Below are positions 1 to 23,213 of a stretch of DNA of 64,000 bases, piece after piece. The notes beneath the pieces were generated by a model. It did not search any database. It saw only the letters and a program-made list of their open reading frames with translations, and had not been told where the DNA came from. Location of the stretch: IMG/VR virus record IMGVR_UViG_3300042545_001134, positions 124,001-188,000 of that record; one strand, written 5' to 3'. Within the stretch, counting starts at the first letter, position 1. Every line of letters starts with the position of its first letter. The position numbers and the translations under genes were made by a program.

Positions 1-3000
1 TAACAAAGAGTTTAACTCCTGAAACGGGTGATGCACCCATCGCAATGTTTCCACTAGTATTAAGATGGAAATCGTTTTGATTATAACGACCCATTATAAC
101 TTTATTATCAGCGAACGCCTCAATTACGGGAACACCCGCAATTGTATTAACTGAGAATAATGAGTTACTTAAATCATCTGTGATTGTAAACAATCTACCA
201 TTAACACCATCAACCGTGAATACTTCTGTTCCACTTGCTGTACTGTTTAATTTAACAGTTGATAAGTTTGAAGTACTTGCCGGATTTAAATAATATGCGG
301 TGTCATTAATATCGTAGTAAATTGGTGCGTAAACTCTACCTGAACCATCTACTCTATATGTGAATGATGAACTGTCCGTTCTTAATGCGTAACCATAAGT
401 GGCCCCTGCGGCAATGTTTACATAAATACCATATTCTGATTTAGAACTGTTATATGCGTTGAACTGTGCCAACCAGTCATTGTTGTTTGTTGCGGTTACA
501 TATAAAGTGGCATCTTGAACTGTGTTACTATTTCCACCATCAATCCAAAGACCTCTATTATCATAAGTTCGAACCATTGTTGATTCGGTTTGGTAGATAC
601 CACCACCATGTGTTGAGTTGTACCAACCAGTATTTCCACTACTTCTAAACCAATCACTTGCGTTAAATGAAGCGGCATAAACGTAATCAGTTGATGGATT
701 TACATAAACTTCAGCGGTTCCATAAACCGCATTTCCTGAACCCCATAATAATTGATAGTTACTGTTACTATTATTGTTGTAACTAATTGCCCCAAGATAC
801 GTTCCCGCCTCTTGGTACTTACCATCGATATCAACTGTTACAGTACCGCCATCATTTCTTGTCATGGTGATAACACCAGTTGATGTATTAAATGTTGCTC
901 CGGTTACATAATAATTTGTGTCGGTATCAACAACTGTTTCACTTGCGGTGGTGATTCCGGTGATGTGACCAAAACTATCTAATAAAATGTCTTGTATGTA
1001 AGTTCTACCTGAGTTGTCTGAAGAACCAGCAGCACTTACTGAAGGGTGACCTGTTAAGAACGCAGATGCGTGTTGACCATCAAGAGTATCCGCATCCAAC
1101 CCACTTCCACTTCCATCATTACCAGAATGCCAAATTCTATATCTAACGTTACCTACTGACCATCCACCCCATACTAAGTCATTTTCTGCACCACCTAATC
1201 CGAAGTAACCCGCATAATCTCCACCAATGTGGAATGTCATATATGCATCAGCACCTGCGGTATCTTGGTAGACAGTTAATCCCCTATTAGCGGCGGCAAC
1301 TGTATTAATAAATGTATTTGATGTTTGATAAAACTCGGCAGTTCTTGTTGTTGATGCCCCACGAGAAAGTACACTATCTAATGTATCGGTTTCAGAATAA
1401 CCAGTTATGTATCCACTATTATTTGTAAACTGAGAAATATTCATACTACTCAACGCACCAGCAGTATCGGCATAACCCGCATAAATCTTATACCAAGAAC
1501 CCCACGTAGTTGCTTCTCTTGTTCTAAATGTTACATACCTATCAGAAGTATTATATCTTGGGATTGCCAACTGCATTGCGTAGTTAGCAAATGAATAATC
1601 ATTACCAAGTCCCAAAGTAAATCCGTAGAATTGTGATGAACCCGTACCCGGACCGTTTGTTGACCCATTCACATATCTCGCTCCAAAGTCTCCAACACTA
1701 TTAAAATCGGTGTAGGTACTATGATTCTGACCCATGTTATTGAACAAACGATGTTCGTCTGTCATATCATCTATTACCGAATGGGTGTGTGATGATTCCG
1801 CATATTTTCCATCAATATCAACCGTGACTGTACCACCATCATTTCTTGTCATGGTGATAACACCAGTTGAAGTATTAAATGTTGCTCCCGTTACGTAATA
1901 GTTCGTATCGGTGTTAACTGATGATATATCAACCGGACTACTAAACGCCCCTCCTGAACCGGTAAATGTTAAATTAGTGCCGTCAAAAGTAACATCACTA
2001 ATAAAATCATTCGTATCGGTTACAGTCTCACTCGCGGTAGTGATACCGGTTATATGACCAAAACCATCCAATAAAATATCTTGTATGTATGTGCGTCCAC
2101 TGTTGTTCGATGAACCTGCAGCACTTACTGAAGGGTGAGCAGTTAAGAATGAAGATGCGTGAAGACCATCTAAGGTATCGGCATCTAATCCTGAAGATGC
2201 CCCATCAGTACCCGCAGTCCACACTTTTGAATTATCCCAATATAAAACACCATCAGTTCTCATTTCTAAGAACTTACCAACATTACCACTTATATGAAAC
2301 GCAACACCAGTGGTGGTGTTACCATATGATTCAGTTGTAAGTGCTGCGGTCGAGTAGTTATTATCGGTTTGATTCTTTCTGGCATTTAAACCTCCGGTGA
2401 ACACCGATTGTGTTGAGGTTGACGCTCCCCTTGCTGTTACAGATGCCAATGTATCCGTTTCAGAATATGAAGTTAAGAATGAAGATGCGTGAAGACCATC
2501 TAAGGTATCAGCATCTAATCCTGAAGATGCCCCATCGTTTCCTGAGTGCCATACCGTTCCACCATTTACTGTTGCGGAACCACTAACCGCAAATGAACCA
2601 CTTACTGTTGTTGTTGTTCCACTAACAACAAATGCGTTTGTTCCGAATGAACCCGCAACTAATTTGTCATCAGAGAATACCTCTAATATTGGTAAACCTG
2701 AAATATCGTTAACTGAGAATAATGAACCCGATAAACTATCGGTTATTGAGAACAATTGTCCTTGTGAACCTTGAACATCAAATACTAAACTACCTGAACC
2801 ATAAACTTGTAATGGAACGTTTGGTGTTGCTGTATCTGATTCACCATAACCAACTCTAACACCTCTAGCAACTGTTAAGTAACCATTGGTTGTAAGTGCC
2901 ATTGCACCTTGTGCATCACTATGAGCAGTATCACCCCACCAAAAACCTCTATCGTCTTCACTATTGAATTGGAAAGTCATTGCGTAGTCATTAAGACCAC

Positions 3001-6000
3001 CATATGTCATTCCATTCATCATACCAATTGCATACTCACTAGATGTACCCCATAATCTAAACTTATCTCTTAATGGTGAATACGTTGTGTTATATGCCGT
3101 TGCGGTAACACTTGAGAATGTTGGACTATTACTTGTACCTAAATCTTGGTTGATTGTATATTGAGTAATATTGTATGCGTTTCCGGTAATATTACCTGTG
3201 ATTTTTGAACCGGCAAGTGCGGTAATCCATGAAGGGTTACTATATGTACCGTTATCGTAAACACCATTAGTTACCGTTGCGGCATTTCCTGATATATTGA
3301 TACCCCAAGTACCATTTTCAAAAACATATTTGTAACCGGCACCATTTCTAAGGAAACCATCTGTCGCCAAATAGAATCTAACATTACCTGATTGTGTGAA
3401 TTTAATTTCTTCATCACTATCATCCTGTGTACCGATTTCTAAGTATGAACCACCAGCGGCGTTACTTGTTGAAATAAACTTGATGAATGCAGCATCGGTA
3501 TTCACTCCCCATGTTAAACCTAAGTTTGATGTTGCACCGAATGCAATGTTACCGGTCATTGTACCTCCCGATAATGGAAGTTTTGCTCCGATTGAACTCG
3601 CAATCGTTGTTGCGAAGTTCGCATCGTCACCTAACGCCGCCGCCAATTCATTTAAAGTATCAAGTGCTGAAGGTGCCCCATCAATCAGGTTCGTAATTTG
3701 TGTTTGTACATAACCTGTGGTTGCATAACCCTGACTTGCGTGGTTACCCCATCCATATGCGGTATCCCAATTTGATTTGTTATATCCTGTTATCGCAACC
3801 GAACCTCCAAAGAAGTTGGCGATTTCAGTTTCTGTATAATATCTTGTATCTGTTGTAGTTGAATAGTTGTTTGTATTCAAATACTCATATTGTGTTATGT
3901 CTCCACCACCGTAGATTGGTCCCGTCACAATCATACCACCTTGTGGTGTTTGGTCAAGGTCAACTTGTGCTGGAGTTTCGGTCAATGCGGGGAAATTACT
4001 TACATCTCCAGGGTCAACAGCCTCATCAACCCAATCTTTAATAACCCAACCGCTTGATTGGATATTTTCCAACATCCATGCTTGTACCGTAGAACTACTT
4101 TGGTCTATATAAACTTGAAGTAATGCACCATCGTATGTTGAACCATCTTGAATACGAATGTATCTAAATGGATTACCTGAATATCTTGAGTTAATTAAAA
4201 CTGTAATATCTGAGTAATTTCCATAATGGTGTGTTGCATAGAACACAACTGATTGGTGATTACCACTTGAGGTGTCTCTTAAAATAAATTTACCAACCGC
4301 TCTGCTCCCCGTGTTTACCGCAATGGTATACCATCGACCATCGGGTAATCCCAAAGTTTCTACATTTTTAACATACGGAAGATATCTATCATCATGAGTG
4401 TGACCCAATTCTGAATACTTTCCATCGATATCAACTGTTACAGTATTACCGTCATTACGTGTAAGTGTAATAATACCATTACCTGTATTGAAAGTTGCTC
4501 CTGTTACATAGTAATTTGTATTTGTATCAACAACCGTTTCAGTACCTGTTGTAATTCCTGTAATATGTCCAAATGAATCTAATAAGATGTCTTGGATATA
4601 TGTTCTTCCTGAGTTATCAGATGAACTCGCCGCACTCACCGAAGGGTGAGCGGTTAAGAATCTACCATCGATATCAACGGTGATTGTGTTTCCGTCATTT
4701 CTTGTTAAAGTGATAACCCCATCACCTGTGTTGAACGTTGCCCCCGTTACATAATAGTTCGTATCGGTTACTGTTTCACTTGCGGTTGTTATACCTGTTA
4801 TATGTCCAAATGAATCTAAAAGTATGTCTTGGATGTATGTTCTTCCACTATTGTTCGAAGAACTTGCCGCAGATACAGAAGGGTGTGCGGTTAAATATGT
4901 GTTAGTGTCTAACGAACCATCACCCTTAACGAACTCACCACTATTACCTCCTTGGGTAATGAATGATGCCGCAGTTATTGATATTGTTGAGGTGTTACCT
5001 CTTTGAACAACATCCTCTAATGTTGATATTTCACTGTACGATGTTAAGAACCTACCATCGATATCAACAGTATATGTTCCACCGTCGTTACGAGTGTATG
5101 TAATTACACCGTTACTGGTATTGAAGGTTGCACCTGTTGTGTAGTAATCAGTACTTGATACACCATATCTTCCATCTAAATCAACAGTATAAGTTCCACC
5201 ATCTGTTCTTGTGAAAGTTAAAACACCGTCGCCCGTGTTAAATGTTACACCAGTTGTGTAATAGTTTAAGTATGAAGTTAAATATGTATTTGTATCAACA
5301 CTACCATCTGCCTTTAAGAACTGAGATGATGTTCCACCACTCTTAACAAATGATGTTGCTCTTACATTTCCACTCACCGCCAATTTATATCCCGATACAG
5401 GTAGTAATCCCATACCAATCTCACCTGTTGTTCCTAAGTAGAAATCATTTTGATTAAATCTACCCATTACAATGTGGTAATCGGCAAATGCCTCAATCAC
5501 AGGTAAACCTGAAATTGTACTAACTGAGAATAATGAATTACTTAAATCATCAGTAACCGCAAACAATCTACCATTTGTACCGTCAACCGCAAATACGGTT
5601 GCTCCCGATACTGATTCGTAAACTGTTAATGTACCACCACTAATTACAACATCATTATATGATGTCATTCCACTTACAGTGATTGCTTGGTTGGTTGTGT
5701 TACCTCTTGCGGTAACTGTTGCTAGTGTATCTGTTTCACTATATGAAGTTAAGAATCTACCATCAATATCAACTGTTACAGTTCCACCATCGTTTCTTGT
5801 TAACGTAATAATACCATTACCGGTATTGAAGGTTGCTCCCGTTACGTAATAGTTTGTATCGGTGTTAACTGATGATATATCAACCGGACTACTAAACGCT
5901 CCACCTGAACCGGTGAATGTTAAATTAGTACCATCGAAAGTAACATCACTAATAAAATCATTAGTATCTGTTACGGTTTCAGTTGCAGTTGTGATTCCCG

Positions 6001-7969
6001 TTATATGACCAAAACCATCTAATAAGATGTCTTGGATATATGTTCTTCCTGAATTGTTTGATGAACCTGCAGCGCTTACTGAAGGGTGGGCGGTTAAATA
6101 AGTGTTCGAATCAACACTACCGTCTGCCTTTAAGAACTGCGTTGAAAGTCCACCTATTTTTTTTATTGTCGCGGCATTTAGTATACCACCATTTTCAAAG
6201 AAAATTCTTGGAACACCACCACCATCGATGAACTCTAATTGGTCAAAACTTGAATCCTTATTATATCTAATTAGGTACCCATTAAATGCACCCCCATCAC
6301 CGGCATACATTTCAATTGTTGTAAATCCGGTTGAGACGTTAATTTGACCTAATGTAAGTGTTGTATTATTCTTAAAGATACTAAGGTTACCAGTCATGGT
6401 ATCGCCACTCTTAGAAACTTTGTTTCCAATTGATGTTGCGACTGTTGTTGCGAAGTTAGGGTCATCCCCTAACGCCGCTGCCAATTCATTTAAGGTATCT
6501 AATGTTGATGGTGACGAATCAATTAGGTTAGTAATTTGTGTTTGTACGTAACCTGTAGTTGCATAACCATTAAGTGATGTTGATGTTAAATATGTGTTTG
6601 TGTCAACACCTAATGTACCATCTGAGTTAATAAACTTAACGAAACCATTTGTTGAATATGCATTGAATCTTGTTGTACCATTATTACTTAAACGGAAGTA
6701 TTCACTTCCACCAAATGTATACCATAATCCTTGGTTAGGTGTTGATGCGTTACTTCCACCAATATTGAAAACACTTTGTGTGCTTCCATCACCCGCCTTT
6801 AAAACTAAATTACTAAAGAATTGGTCGGCGGTACCTTGGTTATTTGAGTGGATATTAATTTGTCCACCACTCTTAATTGAGTAATTAACATTATTATCAG
6901 CAACAGGTCCAAATTGGATGTCACCGTTTGTTGTTAATCCACCAACTTCGATTGTATTTGTTGTTACCGAACCTCTGTCTGTTACATTATCAAATGTATC
7001 CGTTTCGGTGTATCCTGTTAGATATGAACCAGCGGGTTGGAATCTTCCATCAATGTCAACGGTGTATGTTCCACCATCGTTTTTTGTAAACGTGATGACA
7101 CCATCTCCGGTGTTAAACGTTGCACCAGTTGTAAATGTATTTGTATCTGTGTAACCTGTTAGGAAACCAAGAGAATATATCTGAGCGGAACCACTAATGA
7201 TATTAGAAGGTATTCCCGTCAATCCACTATAAGAAATTTGAGATGAACCCGATACTAATGTTGGTACATTAATAAGGTATGAATAACCTAATGAACCCGA
7301 TAAACCGTTGGTTACAATTAATGAACCTGTAATTTCAGAATTACTATTGATTGATACGATTGTACCCGTATCTGTAATATTTGAAGAGGTGATGTGGTCA
7401 CCACCTTGACCTTTTGTTACTCTATTATTTATGGTACCAACTTCATCACCAAGAGAACCTGTGTTTCTTGGACCTGAAATTAACATACCACCACTATACA
7501 TGGAGTCGACCGTGTTAGTGTAAACCCAATGATTTTTTTCACTATCCCATGTAAGAGATGCAGTCGCATTAGATGAACCCGAATCGTATACTTTAATACC
7601 TCCGAATCTCTCTAACGGTTCAAAAACGTTTACACTAATGTATGATTCACTAACTGCAAGTTGTGATGCGGTCAAGTAAAGTACCGATGATGAACCGTGT
7701 ACAATTAAATCATTAAGAATATAAACTGAACCACTTACAAATTGATTTCCTAAAAGATTTAGAGAACCCGTTAATGTATGTGAGCCGGAAATGTTAACAC
7801 TACCAGTAAAATTATGATTATCACTTAATTGGTCTCCGAACTTGGTGTTTCCATCAACAGTCAAAGAACCTGTAATAGTTTGTGAACCACTAACAACCAA
7901 GTTACCTTTTAATTCTGATGAACCCGATACGTGTAACGACCCCGTTACGTCTGCGTCAAATATTCTCAT
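1..7969 (-). CDS. Giant repetitive tail fibre / receptor-binding protein, partial (>=2656 aa, runs off the left edge)
   Basis: ATG at 7969 (MRIFDADVTGSLHVSGS). The same frame reads ...GNIAMGASPVSGVKLFV at position 1, and the ORF track reports no closed ORF in this frame, implying no internal stop. G/S/T/N-rich with fibre motifs LDTLNELAAALGDDxNFATT (x2) and GLDADTLDGxHASxFL (x3), and 8 copies of YVTGATFNTxTGVITxTRxDGxTVTVDxDG. Confidence 0.88.
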   Translation of the reverse strand, partial: MRIFDADVTGSLHVSGSSELKGNLVVSGSQTITGSLTVDGNTKFGDQLSDNHNFTGSVNISGSHTLTGSLNLLGNQFVSGSVYILNDLIVHGSSSVLYLTASQLAVSESYISVNVFEPLERFGGIKVYDSGSSNATASLTWDSEKNHWVYTNTVDSMYSGGMLISGPRNTGSLGDEVGTINNRVTKGQGGDHITSSNITDTGTIVSINSNSEITGSLIVTNGLSGSLGYSYLINVPTLVSGSSQISYSGLTGIPSNIISGSAQIYSLGFLTGYTDTNTFTTGATFNTGDGVITFTKNDGGTYTVDIDGRFQPAGSYLTGYTETDTFDNVTDRGSVTTNTIEVGGLTTNGDIQFGPVADNNVNYSIKSGGQINIHSNNQGTADQFFSNLVLKAGDGSTQSVFNIGGSNASTPNQGLWYTFGGSEYFRLSNNGTTRFNAYSTNGFVKFINSDGTLGVDTNTYLTSTSLNGYATTGYVQTQITNLIDSSPSTLDTLNELAAALGDDPNFATTVATSIGNKVSKSGDTMTGNLSIFKNNTTLTLGQINVSTGFTTIEMYAGDGGAFNGYLIRYNKDSSFDQLEFIDGGGVPRIFFENGGILNAATIKKIGGLSTQFLKADGSVDSNTYLTAHPSVSAAGSSNNSGRTYIQDILLDGFGHITGITTATETVTDTNDFISDVTFDGTNLTFTGSGGAFSSPVDISSVNTDTNYYVTGATFNTGNGIITLTRNDGGTVTVDIDGRFLTSYSETDTLATVTARGNTTNQAITVSGMTSYNDVVISGGTLTVYESVSGATVFAVDGTNGRLFAVTDDLSNSLFSVSTISGLPVIEAFADYHIVMGRFNQNDFYLGTTGEIGMGLLPVSGYKLAVSGNVRATSFVKSGGTSSQFLKADGSVDTNTYLTSYLNYYTTGVTFNTGDGVLTFTRTDGGTYTVDLDGRYGVSSTDYYTTGATFNTSNGVITYTRNDGGTYTVDIDGRFLTSYSEISTLEDVVQRGNTSTISITAASFITQGGNSGEFVKGDGSLDTNTYLTAHPSVSAASSSNNSGRTYIQDILLDSFGHITGITTASETVTDTNYYVTGATFNTGDGVITLTRNDGNTITVDIDGRFLTAHPSVSAASSSDNSGRTYIQDILLDSFGHITGITTGTETVVDTNTNYYVTGATFNTGNGIITLTRNDGNTVTVDIDGKYSELGHTHDDRYLPYVKNVETLGLPDGRWYTIAVNTGSRAVGKFILRDTSSGNHQSVVFYATHHYGNYSDITVLINSRYSGNPFRYIRIQDGSTYDGALLQVYIDQSSSTVQAWMLENIQSSGWVIKDWVDEAVDPGDVSNFPALTETPAQVDLDQTPQGGMIVTGPIYGGGDITQYEYLNTNNYSTTTDTRYYTETEIANFFGGSVAITGYNKSNWDTAYGWGNHASQGYATTGYVQTQITNLIDGAPSALDTLNELAAALGDDANFATTIASSIGAKLPLSGGTMTGNIAFGATSNLGLTWGVNTDAAFIKFISTSNAAGGSYLEIGTQDDSDEEIKFTQSGNVRFYLATDGFLRNGAGYKYVFENGTWGINISGNAATVTNGVYDNGTYSNPSWITALAGSKITGNITGNAYNITQYTINQDLGTSNSPTFSSVTATAYNTTYSPLRDKFRLWGTSSEYAIGMMNGMTYGGLNDYAMTFQFNSEDDRGFWWGDTAHSDAQGAMALTTNGYLTVARGVRVGYGESDTATPNVPLQVYGSGSLVFDVQGSQGQLFSITDSLSGSLFSVNDISGLPILEVFSDDKLVAGSFGTNAFVVSGTTTTVSGSFAVSGSATVNGGTVWHSGNDGASSGLDADTLDGLHASSFLTSYSETDTLASVTARGASTSTQSVFTGGLNARKNQTDNNYSTAALTTESYGNTTTGVAFHISGNVGKFLEMRTDGVLYWDNSKVWTAGTDGASSGLDADTLDGLHASSFLTAHPSVSAAGSSNNSGRTYIQDILLDGFGHITGITTASETVTDTNDFISDVTFDGTNLTFTGSGGAFSSPVDISSVNTDTNYYVTGATFNTSTGVITMTRNDGGTVTVDIDGKYAESSHTHSVIDDMTDEHRLFNNMGQNHSTYTDFNSVGDFGARYVNGSTNGPGTGSSQFYGFTLGLGNDYSFANYAMQLAIPRYNTSDRYVTFRTREATTWGSWYKIYAGYADTAGALSSMNISQFTNNSGYITGYSETDTLDSVLSRGASTTRTAEFYQTSNTFINTVAAANRGLTVYQDTAGADAYMTFHIGGDYAGYFGLGGAENDLVWGGWSVGNVRYRIWHSGNDGSGSGLDADTLDGQHASAFLTGHPSVSAAGSSDNSGRTYIQDILLDSFGHITGITTASETVVDTDTNYYVTGATFNTSTGVITMTRNDGGTVTVDIDGKYQEAGTYLGAISYNNNSNSNYQLLWGSGNAVYGTAEVYVNPSTDYVYAASFNASDWFRSSGNTGWYNSTHGGGIYQTESTMVRTYDNRGLWIDGGNSNTVQDATLYVTATNNNDWLAQFNAYNSSKSEYGIYVNIAAGATYGYALRTDSSSFTYRVDGSGRVYAPIYYDINDTAYYLNPASTSNLSTVKLNSTASGTEVFTVDGVNGRLFTITDDLSNSLFSVNTIAGVPVIEAFADNKVIMGRYNQNDFHLNTSGNIAMGASPVSGVKLFV
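1881..2090. repeat. Intragenic duplication, copy A (copy B at about 5832-6041)
   Basis: Near-identical run gttgctcccgttacgtaatagtt..gtatcggtgttaactgatgatatatcaaccggactactaaacgc...aaagtaacatcactaataaaatcatt at both loci; differences are mostly at synonymous positions. Confidence 0.9.
2141..2536. repeat. 66-bp direct repeat x2 (2141-2206 and 2471-2536)
   Basis: agttaagaatgaagatgcgtgaagaccatctaaggtatc(g/a)gcatctaatcctgaagatgccccatc with one mismatch; encodes DGASSGLDADTLDGLHASSFLT. Confidence 0.9.
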
Positions 7970-8065: not shown

Positions 8066-8542
8066 ATGGTCCCTTATAGTCTAAACATTCAAAACAGAAT
8101 TTATAGTGAAAATACACAATTAGTTGTGGAAGAAATACTAGAACCGAATCACTCGGATATCCAAAAAACAATTGACAATTTTAATTCCCAATACACATGG
8201 GATATGATGTTTACCATACAAGAAACCGAATTAAGAATGGATTATGGTGATAGACTGTTCTTATTTTATCTGAATGGTGAGGTTGTGGGACATACGTGGG
8301 TTTCAAAAAAACATCTTCCTGAACCACATATATACATATATAATGTGTTTGTGGATAAAACCAAACATAACAAAGAGTTATGTGATAGTACAACTTATGT
8401 TTGTATGGTGATGGATATATTATCTAAGGAAGGTTACACCGATGTTCACCTTTACGTGGATAAATGGCATAAAAAAGCCCAAACTTTTTTTACGAGAATG
8501 GGCTTTAAAGAATCAAATTGGCTTACTCTCCAAGATGTTTAA
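8066..8542 (+). CDS. GNAT-family N-acetyltransferase-like protein
   Basis: 158 aa; FLFYLNGEVVGHTW beta-strand, IYIYNVFVDK (motif A-like), VHLYVDKWHKKAQTFFTRMGF (motif B, N.xA..FY..xGF-like). Confidence 0.65.
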   Translation: MVPYSLNIQNRIYSENTQLVVEEILEPNHSDIQKTIDNFNSQYTWDMMFTIQETELRMDYGDRLFLFYLNGEVVGHTWVSKKHLPEPHIYIYNVFVDKTKHNKELCDSTTYVCMVMDILSKEGYTDVHLYVDKWHKKAQTFFTRMGFKESNWLTLQDV

Positions 8543-8672
8543 GTTTAATTGCATTAACAATTTGTGTCGTTAAATTCTTTAAAATTACCTTTTTAGGTTC
8601 TGAAACCTTTTTCAAGAACATTTTATATTCTTGAGCGGTATATAGTTTGTTTTTGTTTACTTCTGTACTCAT
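8523..8672 (-). CDS. Small hypothetical protein (49 aa, below ORF-track cutoff)
   Basis: Hand translation MSTEVNKNKLYTAQEYKMFLKKVSEPKKVILKNLTTQIVNAIKLKHLGE*; A-rich leader; starts 18 nt after the ATP-grasp gene stop. Confidence 0.6.
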   Translation of the reverse strand: MSTEVNKNKLYTAQEYKMFLKKVSEPKKVILKNLTTQIVNAIKLKHLGE

Positions 8673-8690
8673 AGTTTTAATTTTTTAATT

Positions 8691-10604
8691 TTACGCTCCA
8701 TGTTCTTTTGTGTTACTCGTTTCACAAGTAAAAAATTCTCCCGGGCCTGAGGGGGGGTCGTATCTTAAAACATATTGTGGTGGATAGGAAGTTATTGAAC
8801 AATCAACTGGTCCAAATGTTTGAGTTGTCAACTCACCAGCACAACAAAAATAATCACAATAATTACACGTATAAGTTGGAAGGGGACCGCTGTATGGCAT
8901 TTGTCTTTCACAATCACTTCTGTTTGCCCCATAAAAATAAACGTACCATTGTGGGGTCATTGGGATACTCATTGGGTCATACCCTGGTGGAAATGGCTCA
9001 CATGGTTGAGTACAAGACCAACTACAATTCGGTTGGCCCCTTTCACCCCATTCAACCATCGGAGGTAAATCGTTACAATTACCACCAAAACCATTTCTTA
9101 AATTATTTTGATTAGGGGGGTTGGGTTGTGAAGGAAAGTTACCGTAAGATGGTTGATAAAAAGAAGCACAAACACCAGCGTTTGATTGTACTGACGCAAA
9201 TCTTGGTTGATTGTTTTCTTCTTCGACAACCATATAGTTATCTATATCTTCTATGTCGAGTGTCGATACATTTTGTTTTGTGAATTGGAATTTAATGTTC
9301 AAAATATTTTTTATAACAAAACTTTCTGTATCCATATCATATAAAACAACACCATCTCCAACCTCTAAGAATTGATATTTTTTATATTTTGTTATGCCAT
9401 TATTGTCCACCGCAATTGATGAGTTCGGTACGTCAGAAAAAATAATACCGTCTTCCAATTCAATTCTCCTAACCCAAATCAATACATTTTCATATTTTGA
9501 AATGTTTTTAACTTTTGAAAAACCTATCGTTGAACCTGTTAAAACATTTTCAGTTGTTGCCGACCATGATGTGGTAACACCGGTCAATGGTAACTCATAC
9601 AAATTTGCTGATTTAACATCGTCATCAATTTGTATGGTTGTTCCATTAACAAATGTACCGTCAGATTTTAAAATAAAACTATTATCATCTAAGTGATATA
9701 AAACATTATATATAAGTGAGTTTTGGTGTTTTTGTAAATAAACAGGTCTTTCCCAATATTGTATCTCGTTGTTATCGTCGTAATCTACTGAAACTGATAA
9801 TGGGCAAGGGTTTGTTTGTTCAAATGGTTGGAATAGGTTTAAAATACTAAGAGTATCGCCATATAAAACATCGATGGTTCTATATGTTACCTGTTTACCT
9901 AAAACCAAATTATCCGTGTTAACGATATATTCTTGTAATAGTGTATTTTCAGGTAAATTAGTTTTTAAAGTTTCTAGTTCTTCAATTGTGTCTATTTTAA
10001 AAACTTTTGGGTATATCCCATAATTTGTTGTTGGGTATCTTTCCTTTATAATAAAATTAGGATGAACCCCATTGTCTCGAATATCACTACCGATGGTGTC
10101 AAACCCCAGTGTCCCATTTATAAAATATGTTTTAGGTATTGAAGTTGACTCCGTATCGTACATTAATTTTAAAAACTCAAAGTTGTCCTTTGCGTATGTT
10201 GAATCAACTAACGCGGTTGTATCATAAACCTGTCTTAAAATTAATTCATTTGGGGAGTTTTCAATATATGGAACAGTGATTGCCCTTGGGGATATGACCT
10301 CAATGTGTAATGAAATTCCCTTATCAGCACATTTATCAAATAAAAAATCTTGAAATGTATATAATGTACCGTAATTAACGTTATTGTTTTCATCCAAATC
10401 ACCATACTGACCCGGTAATTCTTTATTTAGAAGGTAGGTAATTTTTGTTATCTCATTGTCAATCAAAAAATTATCAAACGCAACCTCATTAATGTATTCT
10501 CTACAATCAGAAAAAACAAATCCAACGTTGGTATTAATTTCAAGTATTTTGAAACTACCGTCCGTATCCTGTATGTAATCAGTTCCTACTAAAACTCCTC
10601 TCAT
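8691..10604 (-). CDS. Circularly permuted ATP-grasp ligase-like domain + degenerate Hint domain + Cys/Pro-rich C-terminal tail
   Basis: N-terminal DYIQDTDGSFKILEINTN (D..ExN motif moved to the N-terminus), then FIIKERYP and LLQEYI. Aa 303-475 are Hint-like (HLDDNSFILKSDGTFV..IQIDDDVKS; IELEDG; FLEVGD; VSTLDIEDIDNY; VQSN). Aa 476-637 contain 12 Cys. Confidence 0.65.
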   Translation of the reverse strand: MRGVLVGTDYIQDTDGSFKILEINTNVGFVFSDCREYINEVAFDNFLIDNEITKITYLLNKELPGQYGDLDENNNVNYGTLYTFQDFLFDKCADKGISLHIEVISPRAITVPYIENSPNELILRQVYDTTALVDSTYAKDNFEFLKLMYDTESTSIPKTYFINGTLGFDTIGSDIRDNGVHPNFIIKERYPTTNYGIYPKVFKIDTIEELETLKTNLPENTLLQEYIVNTDNLVLGKQVTYRTIDVLYGDTLSILNLFQPFEQTNPCPLSVSVDYDDNNEIQYWERPVYLQKHQNSLIYNVLYHLDDNSFILKSDGTFVNGTTIQIDDDVKSANLYELPLTGVTTSWSATTENVLTGSTIGFSKVKNISKYENVLIWVRRIELEDGIIFSDVPNSSIAVDNNGITKYKKYQFLEVGDGVVLYDMDTESFVIKNILNIKFQFTKQNVSTLDIEDIDNYMVVEEENNQPRFASVQSNAGVCASFYQPSYGNFPSQPNPPNQNNLRNGFGGNCNDLPPMVEWGERGQPNCSWSCTQPCEPFPPGYDPMSIPMTPQWYVYFYGANRSDCERQMPYSGPLPTYTCNYCDYFCCAGELTTQTFGPVDCSITSYPPQYVLRYDPPSGPGEFFTCETSNTKEHGA

Positions 10605-10882
10605 TATATTAATGTAGTATTTTTCTTTGTTGGTAGGTATTTTTCATCAACCTCACCCCATTTTGCCAATGGACATGAATTGTGAATCATACTGAATACC
10701 TTTTTATTAATCGGACATCCACATTCTCCACAGTACGCGGCCCAATCCTGATTTATGTTTAATCTTCTATTTAATGATGGACATTCCGCACAAATCGCAA
10801 TCCTCTCTTTGGACATATTTCGTTGAATGTCTGTTGGGTTGAATGAACTCAACCACGAATTAAAAATGTCTTTTAAGTCCAT
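10604..10882 (-). CDS. Small Cys-cluster protein (DUF6171-like; CxxC...CxxCxC...CP..KW)
   Basis: 92 aa, RIAICAECPSL...YCGECGCPINKKV...SCPLAKW; its stop overlaps the ATP-grasp start (TAATG). Confidence 0.65.
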   Translation of the reverse strand: MDLKDIFNSWLSSFNPTDIQRNMSKERIAICAECPSLNRRLNINQDWAAYCGECGCPINKKVFSMIHNSCPLAKWGEVDEKYLPTKKNTTLI

Positions 10883-10922: not shown

Positions 10923-11036
10923 CTAATGATTGTAGGTAAAAGGGTCTCTTTTCTTTAATTCCCTTAGTTTTTCCCTGAATTTCTTCTTCCGTTTATAGTC
11001 TAACCAAATTCCTTTAATCCACTGTATTATTTTCAT
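10923..11036 (-). CDS. Small basic peptide (37 aa, KRDPFTY motif)
   Basis: Hand translation MKIIQWIKGIWLDYKRKKKFREKLRELKKRDPFTYNH*; ATGA overlap with the carbamoyltransferase stop. Confidence 0.65.
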   Translation of the reverse strand: MKIIQWIKGIWLDYKRKKKFREKLRELKKRDPFTYNH

Positions 11037-12703
11037 TTTTTTGTTATTATGTAGTTATTAATCACCAATATATCTATTTCGGTATCCAAAAATGTCTCTA
11101 CCGCATCTTGTGGGGTGAGTACCATAGTTTTATCTTTAATATTAAAAGATGTGTTAAGTAATATTGGATACCCTGTTATGATTTCAAACTTTTTTAATAG
11201 GTGGTATATGTCATTGTACGGTATAACGGATTGAATTCTTGCCGTCCCATCTACATGAACCACCGCCGGTAGTTTATCGATATATTTTTCTTCCACCTCT
11301 ACCACTTGGTTCATATAGGGAATGAAATCACCACTTTTAAAGTATTTCTTTTGTGATTCAAACAATACCATTGGGGCAAAGGGTCTAAACCCTTCTCTTT
11401 TTTTGATTACTTTGTTGATTCTATCCTTCATATTAGGTGAAGTCGGGTTCGCCAATATTGACCTATGACCTAACGCTCTAGAACCAAATTCAATCTTACC
11501 TTGAAACCACCCAACTATCTTGTTTCTTTTTAATTCCATCGCAATTTTATCATGAACTGATGTAATCGTTTCATATCTTTTATAAGTTATCCCATTTGTG
11601 TTTTTTAACACGTCAAGAATTTCCTCATTTGAGTATGATGGACCTAAAAAAGGATTCGTGTGAACCCTAACGGGTGTTTTCTTTTGATGAAAGTAATTTA
11701 AACATGCACCAATACAAGAACCCGCGTCAGATGGTGCTGGTGGGACCCACACGTTTTTAAAGTCAGTATTTTCTTTTATTTTCCCATTTGCGGTTCCGTT
11801 GTATGCGCATCCACCGGCCAATGCAAGATTTTTTGAATCACTGAATAAGTGAACATCCTTTAAAATCTCAAATAATACGTGTTCATACTTTTCTTGAACG
11901 GATGCTGCAATGTTTTTATGTTCCTGTGTTATATCTTCTTCGGGTAATCTATTTTCAACACCCATTAATTCAATCAAATCTTCGTTGAACATTAGGTCAT
12001 CTCTATCCCATGTGAAATAAATCATATTTGTTTTTAACGACACACAATTGTGTATCACCAACTTATCAATCTTATCTCTATATGGTTCGGGGTCCCCGTA
12101 AGATGCAAGTCCCATCATTTTATATTCACCTTCGTTTGGTTTAAATCCAAGGAACGATGTCATTGCAGAATAGAATAAACCAATTGAATGTGGGTAAACC
12201 GCCAGTGGTATAATCTTAAATGAATCTTTATTCACATATGCGGCCGATAATGTTTCCTTCTCACCAACACCGTCTACCGATAAGACAACACAATCTTTAA
12301 ATGGTGATGTGTAATATGAATAATATAAATGTGAATCGTGATGTTTTGAGTAGAAGATATTGTCTGATAACTTTCTCAACTCTCTTTCTAATGACCAATA
12401 ATTGTATTTGGTTCTTATTAGGGTTTTGGCAACATATATTGGACGCTCAATAAAATTTCTGAAGAATGTATTTTTAACTCTCTCAAGTTTAATTTTTGGG
12501 TCTTCATAATAACAAATCATTTCAACATCTTTCTTTTTGATGTTATATTTTTTGTAGATGTATTGTAACGTATTAACTGGAAATCTATAATCATGTTTTA
12601 CCCCTGTGAATTTTTCTTCTTCACATGCAAAAACCAACTCCCCATTTTTGAACAAACAGACAGATGAGTCATGATAATATGATGATATACCAATTACGTA
12701 CAT
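11033..12703 (-). CDS. Carbamoyltransferase (NodU/CmcH family)
   Basis: GISSYYHDSSVCL...EEEKFTGVKHD, HHDSH, SVDGVGE, LAGGCAYNG, GWFQGKIEFGSRALGHRSIL, KKREGFRPFAP, HVDGTARIQ, LLNTSFN. Confidence 0.95.
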   Translation of the reverse strand: MYVIGISSYYHDSSVCLFKNGELVFACEEEKFTGVKHDYRFPVNTLQYIYKKYNIKKKDVEMICYYEDPKIKLERVKNTFFRNFIERPIYVAKTLIRTKYNYWSLERELRKLSDNIFYSKHHDSHLYYSYYTSPFKDCVVLSVDGVGEKETLSAAYVNKDSFKIIPLAVYPHSIGLFYSAMTSFLGFKPNEGEYKMMGLASYGDPEPYRDKIDKLVIHNCVSLKTNMIYFTWDRDDLMFNEDLIELMGVENRLPEEDITQEHKNIAASVQEKYEHVLFEILKDVHLFSDSKNLALAGGCAYNGTANGKIKENTDFKNVWVPPAPSDAGSCIGACLNYFHQKKTPVRVHTNPFLGPSYSNEEILDVLKNTNGITYKRYETITSVHDKIAMELKRNKIVGWFQGKIEFGSRALGHRSILANPTSPNMKDRINKVIKKREGFRPFAPMVLFESQKKYFKSGDFIPYMNQVVEVEEKYIDKLPAVVHVDGTARIQSVIPYNDIYHLLKKFEIITGYPILLNTSFNIKDKTMVLTPQDAVETFLDTEIDILVINNYIITKK

Positions 12704-13842
12704 TATTTAATTCTTTTACCGTAGTAGATTGTATCTTTATGTACTCTTTCTCTCCATGGGTCTAAAACAATACTACCCATTGGAAATTCTGTTCCATTAA
12801 AAACATTTCTATGTCCTAATAAATAAATAGCGGGTTTGTTAATAGTGTCATATTCAACTTCCATAATAAAACTACCAATAAGTAATGAATATGAACCATC
12901 AATATATTCAACACCGGGTTTGTAACTCTTACCCATAATAACCACAGGTAAAGAATGTTCAACAGAAAGGTCAATTAATCTATTTGCCATGTTCTTTGCC
13001 TGTATTTCTCTCGACAACATAATTGAATCAAAAAGGTCATAACCTAAATCTAATTCTTTTGCCATGTATCTTAATGCAATATTGTCGCGAGGGTGACACG
13101 AACCTCCATCACCTAATCCCGCCTTCATATACGCGGGACCCGTAATGCGGTAGGTACTTCTTTCCAACGCACCCGTTACAATATCGGTATCCATATTACC
13201 ATTCTTTTCCGCAACATCCTGAATCATATTGACCAATGAAATCTTTGCGGATATGAATGTATTATAAAATATTTTAATTGCCTCAGCATCATCCCACGTA
13301 CCAATTTCATAACGAGTCCACGGTGTGATGAGTGTTTCGTAAAAATCTCTCAGTATTTTCGCATCGGTTGTTTCTGAACCATCCTCAGTCCCAATGATAA
13401 CCATTTCAGGATTTACCATATCGTTTTTTACGGTACCCATGGCAATAAGATATGGGTTGTAAATGAATCGATAATTCTTAACAAGTGGAATGAACTCTCT
13501 ACGAGTTGTTCCCGGTAGAACTGTTGAAATTAAAACAACCAATTGTTCTTTGGTTGTGTAATCGTTTATTTCATCTAAGATGTTCTTTACTGTCGTGTAA
13601 TCAAAATCCTTTGGGGTTAGATGTGATGTTGGGTGGCTACCATCATATAATGGGTCATGGGGTGTGGGTACCGCAATAAAGATTAAATCTTTACCGTTAC
13701 ACACTTCTTTTATGGTTGATACCATTTTAAAATTAGTGGGAGTCACTTCTCTAACATCGTAACCCTCAACAAAGTGTTTCTCCGCCATTACTTCCCCCAC
13801 ATCTTTTCCGAGTTTTCCAACTCCGATAAATCCTATTTTCAT
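12703..13842 (-). CDS. ugd: UDP-glucose/GDP-mannose dehydrogenase family protein
   Basis: Rossmann GFIGVGKLG, IAVPTP, ISTVLPGTT, YNPYLIAMG, AEAIKIFYNTF..KIS, GDGGSCHPRD with the catalytic Cys. Confidence 0.92.
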   Translation of the reverse strand: MKIGFIGVGKLGKDVGEVMAEKHFVEGYDVREVTPTNFKMVSTIKEVCNGKDLIFIAVPTPHDPLYDGSHPTSHLTPKDFDYTTVKNILDEINDYTTKEQLVVLISTVLPGTTRREFIPLVKNYRFIYNPYLIAMGTVKNDMVNPEMVIIGTEDGSETTDAKILRDFYETLITPWTRYEIGTWDDAEAIKIFYNTFISAKISLVNMIQDVAEKNGNMDTDIVTGALERSTYRITGPAYMKAGLGDGGSCHPRDNIALRYMAKELDLGYDLFDSIMLSREIQAKNMANRLIDLSVEHSLPVVIMGKSYKPGVEYIDGSYSLLIGSFIMEVEYDTINKPAIYLLGHRNVFNGTEFPMGSIVLDPWRERVHKDTIYYGKRIK

Positions 13843-14570
13843 AATACGTTATTTTTTAAATACGGAACAATTACTTCTTCCGAAAACTTTTTATGTCCAA
13901 ACTCAGTTGGGTGTATACCTCTATGTTCATAACCAACATGTCCATCAAATCCTAATTCGTTGTAGTTCTCTTTAACCCATTCATGACAACCACTCACGGG
14001 GAGGAACTTACTAAAATCAACCATATCAAATAGATATTTTACTTCGGGATGTGATATCAAAGTGTCTGCGCCATTTGCATGGAAAATATCCAAATATGAT
14101 GACATAAAATATTTGATACCTTTACGTTCCAAATACCATTGCACCATTAATATATTTTGCATGGTCATTAACATTGAACCAACATATGTATGTAGATTTT
14201 CGTACCAAATCTTTGCTTGGGGTATGTCCCACATATAGTTAGTTATAACCCAATTTTTTCTACCGTCAACAACATTAGTTGGGTTTTCAATCCATCCATT
14301 AATGTTTGATATTCTTTTTGAATCTTCAGTGTAAAAATCGTGTCGGTCAATACCACTCCACATGACACCAACAATAATGTCTTCAGGTTTGTGTGTCTCT
14401 AATAATTTATCTACTTGGTATATTACTTTTTTAGAAATTAATCCGTTACCCTGTGATGCCATCCCAACATTAACCAAATTGTAATCCATTTCATTACATA
14501 CAAATGTTGGCCAATTCCATGGTTCAAATGTGAAACTACATCCACTGGCAATTAGTGTTTTCTTATTCAT
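13839..14570 (-). CDS. SGNH/GDSL hydrolase-like protein
   Basis: LIASGCSFT (block I Ser), NVGMASQGNGLI (block II), C-terminal IHPTEFGH. Confidence 0.6.
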   Translation of the reverse strand: MNKKTLIASGCSFTFEPWNWPTFVCNEMDYNLVNVGMASQGNGLISKKVIYQVDKLLETHKPEDIIVGVMWSGIDRHDFYTEDSKRISNINGWIENPTNVVDGRKNWVITNYMWDIPQAKIWYENLHTYVGSMLMTMQNILMVQWYLERKGIKYFMSSYLDIFHANGADTLISHPEVKYLFDMVDFSKFLPVSGCHEWVKENYNELGFDGHVGYEHRGIHPTEFGHKKFSEEVIVPYLKNNVL

Positions 14571-15358
14571 TATATTAATTTTTTATTTATGTGTTCAAAC
14601 CAATTGTTTGATAATTGTTCCTGATACTCTAATGTGGTGTGGAATCTATATTTAATTGATGGGTCACTTCCCCGATATGTCCACGGGTTTAGTTTAGAAT
14701 CTAACATTATCATTCTATCACCAAAAAATTCAAACTCATTTGAATATAGATTTGTGTTTATACAATAGAATTCAATTCCGTTATCTAACAACTTTCTTAA
14801 CCCATTGGCAACAATCCAAGAGTCCTGTTGTGCTTTCCAATTGAAGTCGTAGAATCTATCAAACCATTCTTCTAAAATTCTAACCTCAGATTTGTTAAGT
14901 GTCTCCTTAGATTGGTTACCCCAAAAAAAGTTATTTAATGTTTCACTAATCATCTTAGGTGTTATCACTCCGAATCCCCCATGTTCCGAACTCTTATCGG
15001 GAAACCCAACATAATCTATGTTATATAGTCCATTGTTTGGTTCGTACATATTTGTTTTAAATTCCTCTTTAAATTTATCAAAATAATCTTCAGTCGTTAA
15101 GTCGTATATTGGGTATTCAAATCTATCTGGTGAGGTTAGACCAATAATCACCAAATCGGGTTTGTGTTTTATAATCTCATCGATTTGTAAACGAATAGTT
15201 TGATTACTACATCCACCTCGAGCATAGGTTACGACATTCCACCCAAGTTTTTCTCCCAGTAACTCAGTAAAATGTTTACCGTAACCATTATCTAAATCAT
15301 TTTCATTAAATGAAATTGCAGACATAAAACTATCACCACAAACACCTAAAGTTTTCAT
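14570..15358 (-). CDS. SGNH/GDSL hydrolase-like protein
   Basis: LGVCGDSFM, YARGGCSNQTI, C-terminal FHTTLEYQ. Confidence 0.55.
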   Translation of the reverse strand: MKTLGVCGDSFMSAISFNENDLDNGYGKHFTELLGEKLGWNVVTYARGGCSNQTIRLQIDEIIKHKPDLVIIGLTSPDRFEYPIYDLTTEDYFDKFKEEFKTNMYEPNNGLYNIDYVGFPDKSSEHGGFGVITPKMISETLNNFFWGNQSKETLNKSEVRILEEWFDRFYDFNWKAQQDSWIVANGLRKLLDNGIEFYCINTNLYSNEFEFFGDRMIMLDSKLNPWTYRGSDPSIKYRFHTTLEYQEQLSNNWFEHINKKLI

Positions 15359-16785
15359 ATTAATCTATTTGATATCTTTTTGTTTTCAAGTACTGTGAAA
15401 AGTTTAATAACCTCATGATTACTAATCATATTATTAAAATTATGAATTAATACTTCTTCCATTTCTTGGGTTACCTGATAACATTTATCCATATCCCACG
15501 ATGCAATTTCCTCCATTACACTGGTAATCATGTCCATTCTTTTCGTATAATTGGTCTCATTGTCATAACTTTCATCCCACCATTTGTCAAATGTTTTGAA
15601 CCCCAACTCTTTTAATTTTTTAATTGAGTATGGGTTACCAACAATAATGAATGGTTGACACGTATACATTGGTTTGTATGTCTTTTCAGAATAAAATATT
15701 GAACCTTCATCAATTAGAGATTCTGTAACCACATTTACAAAAGTGGTACTATGCGCTCCTTTACTCAAATTGGCCGCTTTGTTATTTTCTAAATCATTTT
15801 CATCGTACACGTAATGTTTTGATGAATCGTATGTGTTATAAAAATCTAATAGTCTTTTCTTTGAATGAACATAATACTCGCCTAAAGTTGCATTTAATAT
15901 GTTAAAAAATTCATGGTGGAACTTATTTTGTGAAGCACCTAAAGATTTAATTGATTTACCTATTAATTTTTCATTTGAAGATAATTCAGCAAACATAACC
16001 AGTCTATGTGGTTTAGTAACCCTATTAAAAGATAAAAAATGAAATTCTTTTTTAGTGGTTTTATTATTTTGTAAATACCAATTAAAGTTTTCTCTCATTT
16101 TTTCTTTTGTTTCATCCATTAAAATTCTACCACCGTCATGAAACCAAAGACTGTGTTGAAAATATGAGTATGGGTGTATAGTAAAATTGTCTCGGATTAA
16201 CCCGTCATTAAGTAATTTTGAATATCTATTAGTAGTCAAGAAATTAGACGTGATAACGATTACATCATCTTTATTGAAATCATATTTAGTTGATAAATTT
16301 GAAACCCATACATAATCGTTCATATTTTGTCCAAAAAATCCCTCTGTTGCCTGTATAATACACAATCTTGCTCTTTTATTTTTAATACATTCAACTAATT
16401 TATCATCTAAATCTATTGTTGGGTATTTTAAAAATAAGTCATTGTTATATAACACAATTGGGTAAACAAAACTTTTATCGGTTTCGTATATTTCATCTAA
16501 AGAAAATACTTTAAAATTACCATATGTGTTATCCAGTAAACCTTCAAAATTTTGACTATAAAATTTACACAAATACATCCTTAACTCATTAGAATCTTCG
16601 GACTTTAATCTATATGGAAATTTAATACCAAGTTCCTCCTCAATTTCATGTATTTTATCAAATTTAGCGGTGTGCCATGGGTGGATATCGTACTTCGCAA
16701 CATTTGAGTTGGGGTATAGAATTCTATTGTCTTCCGTATAAACCAAAATTTCGGAATATGCGACATTTATCTCAATATCTTTCAT
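15355..16785 (-). CDS. Putative glycosyltransferase (GT10/fucosyltransferase-like phage family)
   Basis: C-terminal FLSFNRVTKPHR, FVNVVTES, YSEKTYKP, PFIIVGNPYSIKKLKELGFKTFDKWWDESYD, resembling the GT10 ..SEK...A.....P region. Confidence 0.5.
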   Translation of the reverse strand: MKDIEINVAYSEILVYTEDNRILYPNSNVAKYDIHPWHTAKFDKIHEIEEELGIKFPYRLKSEDSNELRMYLCKFYSQNFEGLLDNTYGNFKVFSLDEIYETDKSFVYPIVLYNNDLFLKYPTIDLDDKLVECIKNKRARLCIIQATEGFFGQNMNDYVWVSNLSTKYDFNKDDVIVITSNFLTTNRYSKLLNDGLIRDNFTIHPYSYFQHSLWFHDGGRILMDETKEKMRENFNWYLQNNKTTKKEFHFLSFNRVTKPHRLVMFAELSSNEKLIGKSIKSLGASQNKFHHEFFNILNATLGEYYVHSKKRLLDFYNTYDSSKHYVYDENDLENNKAANLSKGAHSTTFVNVVTESLIDEGSIFYSEKTYKPMYTCQPFIIVGNPYSIKKLKELGFKTFDKWWDESYDNETNYTKRMDMITSVMEEIASWDMDKCYQVTQEMEEVLIHNFNNMISNHEVIKLFTVLENKKISNRLI

Positions 16786-21011: not shown

Positions 21012-21222
21012 TTATGGTTGGGTCTTTCGGTTTTGTGGTATCGTGCCACTCAGAAAGATAAAATTGAATTCTATCACTCCATTCTTTTTTATCAACCTCT
21101 TCAAACCAAACGGTTAGTGCATCTAAAGAGTTGGCAATTTTTTCCATTGCCTTAACTTTTCTTTGCTCAAGAAGTAGGAACTCATTTTGTTCTTCTGTCG
21201 TGTTTCCTTTTTTTACGGTCAT
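21004..21222 (-). CDS. Hypothetical protein (72 aa)
   Basis: ORF track; overlaps both neighbours in operon fashion. Confidence 0.6.
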   Translation of the reverse strand: MTVKKGNTTEEQNEFLLLEQRKVKAMEKIANSLDALTVWFEEVDKKEWSDRIQFYLSEWHDTTKPKDPTING

Positions 21223-22801: not shown

Positions 22802-22820
22802 AATAGAAATTTACATAAAA

Positions 22821-23183
22821 TTATTCAGGTTGTGAAGGGGTTGGAAACATTTCAGGGTCCATGGGTACTGTCCACTCTTCTGTTGCCAAAAGCGCCAAAA
22901 TATCTTCATGGTTGTACTCAGGATAAGTACCATTATAAATTGCCGGTCTACCATATGTTCCAGCAAGAATTGTTGATGTCCCCTCTTCCATAGTTTCGGG
23001 GTTAATGAAGGTACTTGTTGTATCTTCTTCAACAATATTAACTTCATATTTAATGAATGTTTTAGTTCCATCAACTGAATAACGTAATGTTTCAGTTGAA
23101 TTCTCATGTACTTGATTGAAGTCTACGTTTTCGACTTCTGAGGTTGGGATTACCAACCAACGTCTATTAGGAAAATTGCTCAT
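22821..23183 (-). CDS. Conserved phage hypothetical protein, probably virion-associated
   Basis: 120 aa, VDFNQVHENSTETLRYSVDGTKTFIKY...YNHEDILALLATEEW; preceded by a TATTTAT motif. Confidence 0.7.
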   Translation of the reverse strand: MSNFPNRRWLVIPTSEVENVDFNQVHENSTETLRYSVDGTKTFIKYEVNIVEEDTTSTFINPETMEEGTSTILAGTYGRPAIYNGTYPEYNHEDILALLATEEWTVPMDPEMFPTPSQPE

Positions 23184-23196
23184 ATTCTTTTTATTT

Positions 23197-23203
23197 ATAA
23201 ATA
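23197..23203 (-). promoter_or_regulatory. TATTTAT putative late-promoter element
   Basis: 13 nt upstream of ATG 23183. Confidence 0.5.
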
Positions 23204-23213
23204 TTCTTAATTA

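Follow-up and report, generated by a model that had tools for sequence, protein, structure and literature searches.

Our analysis of a 64,000-nucleotide stretch of viral DNA (positions 124,001 to 188,000 of IMG/VR record IMGVR_UViG_3300042545_001134; hereafter the window) points to a gene that may encode a single-turnover, self-processing enzyme-cargo fusion of a phage of ~310 kb, a reading to which we assign a probability of about 55%. The gene occupies 8691..10604 of the window and, like its subdivisions and the two partner genes described below, is read from the minus strand. A preliminary description had proposed that this frame joins a circularly permuted ATP-grasp enzyme to a Hint domain and a Cys-rich tail. 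The frame is indeed intact, encoding 637 residues (72.4 kDa) that divide into a ligase-like domain (aa 1-298), a degenerate Hint domain (Hint1, aa 299-475) and a candidate cargo (aa 476-637). It has 257 close homologues, none named beyond 'hypothetical protein' and carried on contigs of up to 337 kb, and a profile search with aa 1-298 returns at least 300 clusters at 50% identity.

On the basis of fold and motifs, the N-terminal domain is predicted to be an ATP-grasp-type carboxylate-amine/thiol ligase with the permutation of eukaryotic glutathione synthetase and an intact Mg/ATP site. Downstream of it, N475 at the end of Hint1 would cyclise to a succinimide and break the N475|A476 bond, splitting the protein into fragments of 54.4 kDa (ligase and Hint) and 18.1 kDa (cargo). 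We picture the latter as a mini-protein of the disulfide type whose Cys framework is fixed, whose loops vary and which has a single Lys at the C-terminal end. The family would need a defined C-terminus at this Lys and could obtain it from a stop codon, from an S74 domain cutting itself off just after the Lys or from BIL-type Hints just before it. In the most speculative step the ligase would then perform an ATP-dependent ligation involving the Lys-bearing C-terminal peptide, either with the Lys ε-amine as acceptor or by joining the new termini. We assume that two small partner proteins, of 49 and 92 residues, help in this, and the product may be decorated by enzymes encoded nearby (radical-SAM, oxygenase, methyl-, sulfo- and glycosyl-transferases). 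These steps differ in standing. The folds of the first two domains are shown. Comparison of relatives strongly suggests that the Asn drives release of the cargo, the equivalence of S74 domains, Hint domains and stop codons suggests a defined Lys C-terminus, and ATP-dependent ligation centred on the Lys-bearing peptide is put forward as a hypothesis.

A permuted ATP-grasp-like domain and a degenerate Hint

The model of aa 1-298 (9711..10604) obtained with AlphaFold from a 114-sequence alignment has a predicted local distance difference test score (pLDDT) of 91.4 and a predicted template modelling score (pTM) of 0.87. Its top whole-domain PDB matches in Foldseek are 5oev_A (E 5.8e-5), 3kak_A (E 1.5e-4) and 1m0t_A (E 8e-4), all of them structures of the eukaryotic glutathione synthetase family, with a probability of ~1.0 and template modelling (TM) scores of 0.39-0.45 (TMq; 0.45 for 3kak_A). 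Canonical non-permuted ATP-grasps such as PurK match weakly (E ~0.1; 0.11 for PurK). Among ATP-grasps with a circular permutation the eukaryotic glutathione synthetase is the classic example, for which the 1999 work of Polekhina et al., going by its title as listed in PMC2213659, provides backing.

Alignment of the family profile with E. coli DdlB by hhalign gives a single supported stretch, aa 6-49 against DdlB 254-300 (E 0.0026), in which D9, E22 and N24 align with D257, E270 and N272, the Mg2+ ligands at the DdlB C-terminus. Because this is the only supported stretch, the Mg2+ triad is placed at the N-terminus, in a predicted hairpin at aa 9-24 (10533..10580) that contains the ExN motif; the sequence KILEINTN, which the preliminary description had singled out as the metal-binding motif, lies within it and just beyond, at aa 19-26. 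When the domain is de-permuted in silico by moving its first 30-50 columns to the end, the DdlB alignment becomes colinear over 190-208 columns with no rise in score. K187 then faces DdlB K144 and Q224-E225-Y226 face E180-K181-W182; these residues are conserved in the family, and the region they occupy adds no score. E22 and N24 are invariant, and D9 invariant or nearly so, among 114 relatives and 64 more distant ones. Further residues invariant among the 114 include R124, D128, D134, K187, R189, Q224, R242 and D274.

Since the fold matches and the N-terminal triad agree, the reading of aa 1-298 as a circularly permuted ATP-grasp is supported by model and motif, and the conservation of E22, N24, R124, D134 and K187 argues for a functioning enzyme. 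The original assignment to the permuted peptide ligases thus holds for the fold, which resembles eukaryotic glutathione synthetase, and for the position of the triad; it does not extend to a match with the corresponding Pfam families. The CP_ATPgrasp_1/2 and GSH_synth_ATP hidden Markov models (HMMs) match neither the protein at E ≤ 1 nor any of 114 N-terminal domains at E ≤ 10, and a search of those domains against Pfam at the latter threshold returns scattered noise only, including one RimK match (E 0.22). Nor does the BFVD viral structure library contain a match for the domain. Graspetide-type chemistry was considered for the ligase and not adopted, there being no HMM relation.

Confidence in the full-length model (pLDDT 78) is high over aa 1-475 and low over the tail. 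With this model Foldseek returns 53 PDB matches at E ≤ 1e-3. Each of the 50 listed is a Hint domain of the hedgehog, intein or BIL kind; they include hedgehog (1at0; E 2e-7, TMt 0.82), numerous inteins, a BIL domain from Clostridium (2lwy) and Tetrahymena BIL2 (6y75). A profile of the region (9180..9710) aligns by hhalign with a canonical Hint profile at a probability of 93.6% (E 2e-7), the reference set being drawn from distant relatives and verified by the Pfam families Intein_splicing, PT-HINT and Hint. At the position of Cys1 the window protein has H304, which is unconserved across the family, and the columns aligned with the block B TxxH show neither a conserved Thr nor a conserved His. 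Block F/G is recognisable (..DVE.ID.YLTMEE....P.Y.I.QHN). Its final residue, N475, is invariant in the 114 relatives and the 64 more distant ones, and is preceded in ~90% of relatives by His, as in the canonical intein HN; in the clade of the window the preceding residue is Ser474. At position +1 the window has A476, within the junction ..VQSN475|A476GVCASF.., and only 22 of 230 relatives have Cys, Ser or Thr.

In the nomenclature of PMC4031507, which separates residues for splicing steps 1 and 2 from those for step 3 (Asn cyclisation), Hint1 has lost the former and kept the latter. With Cys1 and TxxH absent an N-terminal thioester is impossible, and thus only Asn-driven C-terminal cleavage is possible. 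Judged by these residues, Hint1 would be unable to splice as an intein and is a candidate C-terminal-cleavage-only domain, with a predicted scissile bond between the N475 and A476 codons (9177..9182) that is marked by the invariance of N475 and by the variable length and type of whatever follows. Some inteins function without the penultimate His, as indicated by a reference within PMC4031507. The preliminary description had assigned aa 303-475 (nt 9698-9180, coordinates that are correct) a Hint layout without Cys1 and TxxH but with the terminal Asn, and both Foldseek and hhalign bear this out.

Across the 64 distant members the only invariant columns besides M1 are E22, N24, R124, D134, K187 and N475, and both active sites are therefore under selection. 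The sequence features are not due to chance, given these invariant motif residues and the independent recovery of both folds.

The candidate cargo and variants of its proposed processing

The tail (aa 476-637; 8694..9179) comprises 162 residues (18.06 kDa) with 12 Cys, 24 Pro, 15 Gly and 13 Tyr, in agreement with the 12 Cys and the abundance of Pro, Gly and Tyr initially reported for the 162 residues after the Asn. Members of the window's clade share 61% identity over the tail and ~89% over the body of the protein; family-wide, outside Cys-Cys columns, identity is 16% for the tail, 50% for the ligase domain and 35% for Hint1. The number of Cys in the tail is even in 113 of 114 relatives (6, 8, 10, 12, 14 or 16; mostly 10 or 12), a pattern that fits disulfides better than metal or Fe-S binding. 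Every one of 179 Cys-rich cargos contains at least one Lys, 119 contain exactly one and 80 end in Lys, although Lys makes up just 2.1% of cargo residues against 5.3% of the body. In the window the sole tail Lys is K633 (8706..8708), corresponding to the family-conserved Lys near the C-terminus, which is followed by between 0 and more than 5 residues. Neither this Lys nor the His that usually precedes the Asn figures in the preliminary description. Searches with the tail retrieved it on this carrier alone, the matches being truncated gene calls of the family, and no paralogue was detected in the window or in the relatives' loci retrieved. Peptidase_S74 (PF13884) gives no match in the window's tail.

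The proposal that the tail is a cargo is strengthened by relatives, in which it is the most variable part and is bracketed in other clades by an S74 domain or a canonical Hint. In a clade of ~640-aa proteins, a Cys module of ~70 residues ends ..CN.NK and is followed by SDKRLK...; these tails match PF13884 from its first profile position, at the Ser of ..NK|SDKRLK.., with P0116, P0107 and P0091 scoring above the Pfam cut-off and the Ser...Lys(+5) dyad present. S74/ICA domains cut N-terminal of this Ser using the Ser/Lys(+5) dyad (PMC8326128), and the cargo product would therefore end in the conserved Lys. P0092 and P0102, which nest within the S74 clade (nearest neighbour the S74-bearing P0085), lack the S74 domain and stop exactly at that Lys. 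In P0151, P0160 and P0168 a canonical Hint that starts at Cys (CF.AGT), contains TxxH and ends ..VHN is inserted between ..GG and K(K), where the nearest Hint-less relatives, P0158 and P0165, encode ..GGQK and ..GNIKMP directly. A canonical Hint precedes the cargo in P0211 and lies on both sides of it in P0244, and canonical Hints are almost always followed by Lys or Arg. In some members the protein stops 5-7 residues past HN, and all but one of these short tails contain Lys. On a tree of the ligase and Hint1 body of 230 proteins the tail type changes at least 23 times, compared with a mean of 72 for shuffled labels. BIL domains can splice or cleave without a flanking nucleophile, according to references within PMC4031507, and Tetrahymena BIL2 joins a Lys ε-amine to a C-terminus through an isopeptide bond (PMC8616854). 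Taking these sequence variants together, release of a defined, Lys-ended C-terminal piece would be their most economical reading.

Several further features of the relatives were observed. P0250, P0251, P0240 and P0233 carry arrays of two to three canonical Hints with joints of 0-5 residues, a Lys or Arg following each HN and no obvious cargo in between. The N-terminal half of the canonical Hints is matched by Pfam AXH (PF08517, Ataxin-1/HBP1) in 31 of 64 proteins with E-values down to 2e-36, an unexpected cross-match exemplified by P0251:471-574. In P0016:540-672 the Cys module is followed by ~120 extra residues containing the motif ..YICQFHGSMQGEI.., which looks cupredoxin-like by eye and has no significant Pfam match.

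The recurrence of Lys beside these predicted processing sites also bears on protein tagging, in which the ligase would couple a carboxylate, from the 49-aa protein or the cargo C-terminus, to a Lys ε-amine on the cargo, a host protein or a virion protein, producing an isopeptide conjugate with an outcome like pupylation or BUBL/BIL2 dispensing. The single conserved Lys of a Lys-poor cargo, the ..GG that ends the cargo before the Cys1 of an inserted Hint, the Lys that follows almost every such Hint and the isopeptide chemistry of BIL2 are all in keeping with tagging, as are the conserved C-terminal motif of the small downstream frame found in at least 62 of 67 loci and the SET and Biotin_lipoyl genes nearby. 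This support is wholly architectural, however, and both the variable number of residues after the Lys and a small-frame C-terminus that differs between clades speak against it, so that we regard tagging as decidedly improbable.

A tentative and rather doubtful extension of the self-processing reading is that the family represents a phage ribosomal-peptide route in which the 475-residue ligase acts as a self-removing 'leader' and the product is a head-to-tail cyclic or isopeptide-branched, disulfide-rich mini-protein. Asn cyclisation would free the cargo N-terminus, a stop codon, S74 domain or BIL-type Hint would set the Lys C-terminus, and the permuted ATP-grasp, or a thioester in the Hint-bearing relatives, would join the ends or acylate the unique Lys. 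Such a route would be the natural counterpart of split-intein peptide cyclisation. For the self-processing reading itself, BIL2 offers a precedent for Hint-mediated transfer onto a Lys ε-amine.

A weapon resembling the polymorphic toxins is a further alternative, in which Hint1 would free a variable Cys-rich toxin at lysis against competing bacteria or grazers and the small downstream frame would be the immunity protein or antidote. The layout does recall polymorphic toxins with a pretoxin HINT (PMC3482391), where a Hint directly precedes a C-terminal module that varies and a small gene comes next; here the small frame lies 2-48 nt downstream, cargo loops diverge fast, cargo type switches repeatedly on the tree, and the relatives' canonical Hints match Pfam PT-HINT. 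Beyond the layout the likeness, which the preliminary description had also raised, breaks down. The phage family has no secretion or trafficking region, its N-terminus is the conserved ligase in every member, a Pfam search of the tails for known toxin domains found none, and the family is virus-restricted. The downstream frame does not track the cargo either, since it and the Cys-rich 92-aa partner persist where the Cys cargo is missing (loci L007, L010 and L012), and instead of being exchanged as cassettes the Cys framework and the Lys are kept. The tail is the fastest-evolving region and yet not hypervariable in the manner of polymorphic toxins, and a toxin function appears highly unlikely.

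Several points weigh against self-processing and ligation as proposed here. The ATP-grasp assignment is by fold and motifs, with no Pfam or NCBIfam match, modest TM-scores and a short DdlB match, and the tail model is of low confidence. At the scissile bond, cleavage competence is uncertain in the window's clade with its Ser in place of the penultimate His, and position +1 is Pro in 43 of 230 relatives. Pro there is disfavoured in engineered inteins. The trimeric state in which S74 domains normally work hints that the cargo may be structural. The ligase residues are invariant also where the cargo consists of 5-7 residues or of Hint domains only, and the ligase may therefore act on something besides the Cys-rich peptide. 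Both cleavage and ligation are predictions from sequences and models.

Module partners, genomic neighbourhood and distribution

The gene forms part of a compact three-gene module. Its ATG overlaps the stop codon of the 92-aa partner (TAATG; 10604..10882), a protein with seven conserved Cys, a weak match to DUF6171 and a match to phrog_13558 (E 7e-8). The 49-aa partner (8523..8672), which ends ..KLKHLGE, starts 19 nt downstream. The Cys-rich partner is present in 63 of 67 loci, either directly upstream or just after the small frame, and an open reading frame of 30-51 residues lies 2-48 nt downstream of the family gene in at least 62 of the 67; the latter carries the conserved C-terminal motif, in a C-terminus that differs between clades. 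The module also occurs in distant relatives of ~20-28% identity and in relatives without a Cys-rich cargo. Used as a query, the 92-aa partner finds just four close homologues, none informatively named.

Next to the module lies an island of sugar and modification genes (11033..25166, minus strand) encoding a Nol-like carbamoyltransferase, a UDP-glucose dehydrogenase, DUF6071, GDSL and radical SAM proteins, two GT7+LamG proteins, a GT2, a methyltransferase and a LamG/sialidase-N protein. The carbamoyltransferase is closest to versions from a Ralstonia jumbo phage, pelagiphage HTVC008M and cyanomyophages. On the other side, a GNAT acetyltransferase gene (8066..8542, plus strand) is wedged between the module and a giant frame (1..7969, minus strand) of more than 2,655 residues that is rich in Thr, Gly, Ser and Asn and runs off the window start. 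A GNAT gene is likewise placed in locus L003, and a gene of like size and strand is found there in L001. The giant frame is probably a giant fibre gene, because its syntenic counterpart encodes 3,313-3,359 residues, with a Peptidase_S74 domain in L001.

The position of the gene at the edge of this glycan island, with its UDP-glucose dehydrogenase, and beside the giant fibre gene would suit an enzyme that is never cleaved. Hint1 would then be a dead structural spacer, the Cys-rich tail would bind or anchor the ligase to the virion fibre or a glycan, and the ligase would serve the adjacent glycan or post-translational modification pathway, for example by amidating the uronic acid derived from UDP-glucose dehydrogenase. 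The loss of the penultimate His in the window's clade, the fair conservation of the tail within that clade (61% identity) and the conservation of the ligase independently of cargo type all speak for an uncleaved protein. The invariant Asn with its preceding His in ~90% of relatives speaks against it, as do relatives that stop 5-7 residues past HN. A second self-cleaving module, S74 or canonical Hint, moreover recurs beyond the cargo and is hard to explain without release. We consider an uncleaved enzyme to be unlikely, and favour the self-processing fusion.

Modification genes are also found at relatives' loci. They comprise as many as four radical-SAM genes, one of them with a SPASM domain (a B12-binding type is encoded at another locus), between three and five genes for 2OG-Fe(II) (2-oxoglutarate) oxygenases, and SET and Biotin_lipoyl genes. 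Around distant members, clusters of oxygenase, SET, PhyH, Biotin_lipoyl and radical-SAM genes were observed at L008:9920-15183 and at L010:1-5559 and 6659-11030. A trio resembling adenosine-5'-phosphosulfate (APS) kinase, an HxGH nucleotidyltransferase and a sulfotransferase, the last recognised by eye from its P-loop PR.GS motif, lies at L001:8738-9531, L002:8419-9238 and L010:5851-6649 and 9534-10127. It would constitute a set for making 3'-phosphoadenosine-5'-phosphosulfate (PAPS) and for sulfation beside the module; alongside this we record that the window's tail is Tyr-rich.

The family is restricted in practice to viruses. Both the N-terminal domain and the tail of the window's protein match the 310,691-bp contig of the IMG/VR record at 100% identity. 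IMG/VR contains 61 family loci, whereas one-genome-per-species collections covering 185,579 species contain three only, every one on a contig of a metagenome-assembled genome (MAG). These three contigs (L004, L005 and L006, one of 248 kb) were binned into Flavobacteriaceae, Pelagibacterales and Methanobacteriota MAGs and are probably mis-binned phage contigs. Other genes of the window are phage-like, including an SbcC-like nuclease, a primase and virion structural proteins. The ATP-grasp-like domain begins at residue 1 in nearly all full-length members listed, most of which are 440-935 residues long. No family in Pfam (E ≤ 1), PHROGs or NCBIfam matched the whole protein, a PDB sequence search by protein and by profile gave no match, and neither did tblastn over 50,697 INPHARED phage genomes.

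Relation to known systems and implications

Each component of the protein comes from a known superfamily, and a Hint that frees a C-terminal module is a familiar theme. Our literature search found no description of this architecture, of the partner proteins or of DUF6171, in accordance with the earlier impression that the architecture is not that of a characterised phage system. Eukaryotic glutathione synthetase (1m0t, 3kak, 5oev) is the best fold match to the N-terminal domain, and the Mg2+-ligand strand pair comes first in both chains. The phage domain is ~150 residues shorter, at a TM-score of ~0.45 and with no detectable sequence-profile similarity, and is fused to a Hint and a cargo. With the hedgehog, intein and BIL domains Hint1 shares the Hint fold, block F/G-like motifs and the terminal (H)N, and as in BIL domains, going by references within PMC4031507, the residue flanking it is not a nucleophile. 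Unlike them it lacks Cys1 and TxxH, and it follows a ligase rather than a ubiquitin-like or signalling domain. The Lys after the canonical Hints of relatives recalls the transfer onto a Lys ε-amine by BUBL BIL2.

Comparison may also be drawn with enzyme-core fused precursors of ribosomally made peptides that carry post-translational modifications (RiPPs) of the borosin/OphMA type and with ATP-grasp RiPP enzymes such as those of graspetides and PGM1. Here too an enzyme and a candidate substrate share one chain, an ATP-grasp would serve as the peptide ligase, and radical-SAM, oxygenase and methyltransferase genes lie nearby. In contrast to these systems, release in the phage protein would be built in through the Hint rather than left to a separate protease; the ligase has no sequence relation to MdnB/MdnC-type ATP-grasps, and the cargo is of a disulfide type and 30-160 residues long. 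The intramolecular Peptidase_S74 chaperone of phage tail spikes and MYRF provides a last parallel, since the ~640-aa clade carries an S74 domain with the Ser...Lys(+5) dyad after the cargo. The window protein itself has no S74 domain, and in relatives the domain follows a 70-residue Cys-rich module rather than a triple β-helix.

The family probably makes and releases a processed peptide. That it embodies a categorically new route of peptide maturation is a possibility we hold with considerable reserve. If both cleavage and ligation are true, the phage protein would provide the first example of an ATP-grasp ligase joined in cis to an autoprocessing Hint, and a model of a protease-free, single-turnover peptide factory with natural stop, S74 and BIL-type Hint variants. 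The C-cleavage-only Hint and the Lys-followed Hints are potential protein-engineering parts. On the same condition, disulfide-rich peptides of 30-160 residues would have a large source confined to viruses in this family, whose 61 IMG/VR contigs are mostly those of large phages. The family could also explain part of the poorly understood islands in big aquatic phages that hold genes for 2OG-oxygenases, radical-SAM and SET proteins, sulfation and glycosylation.

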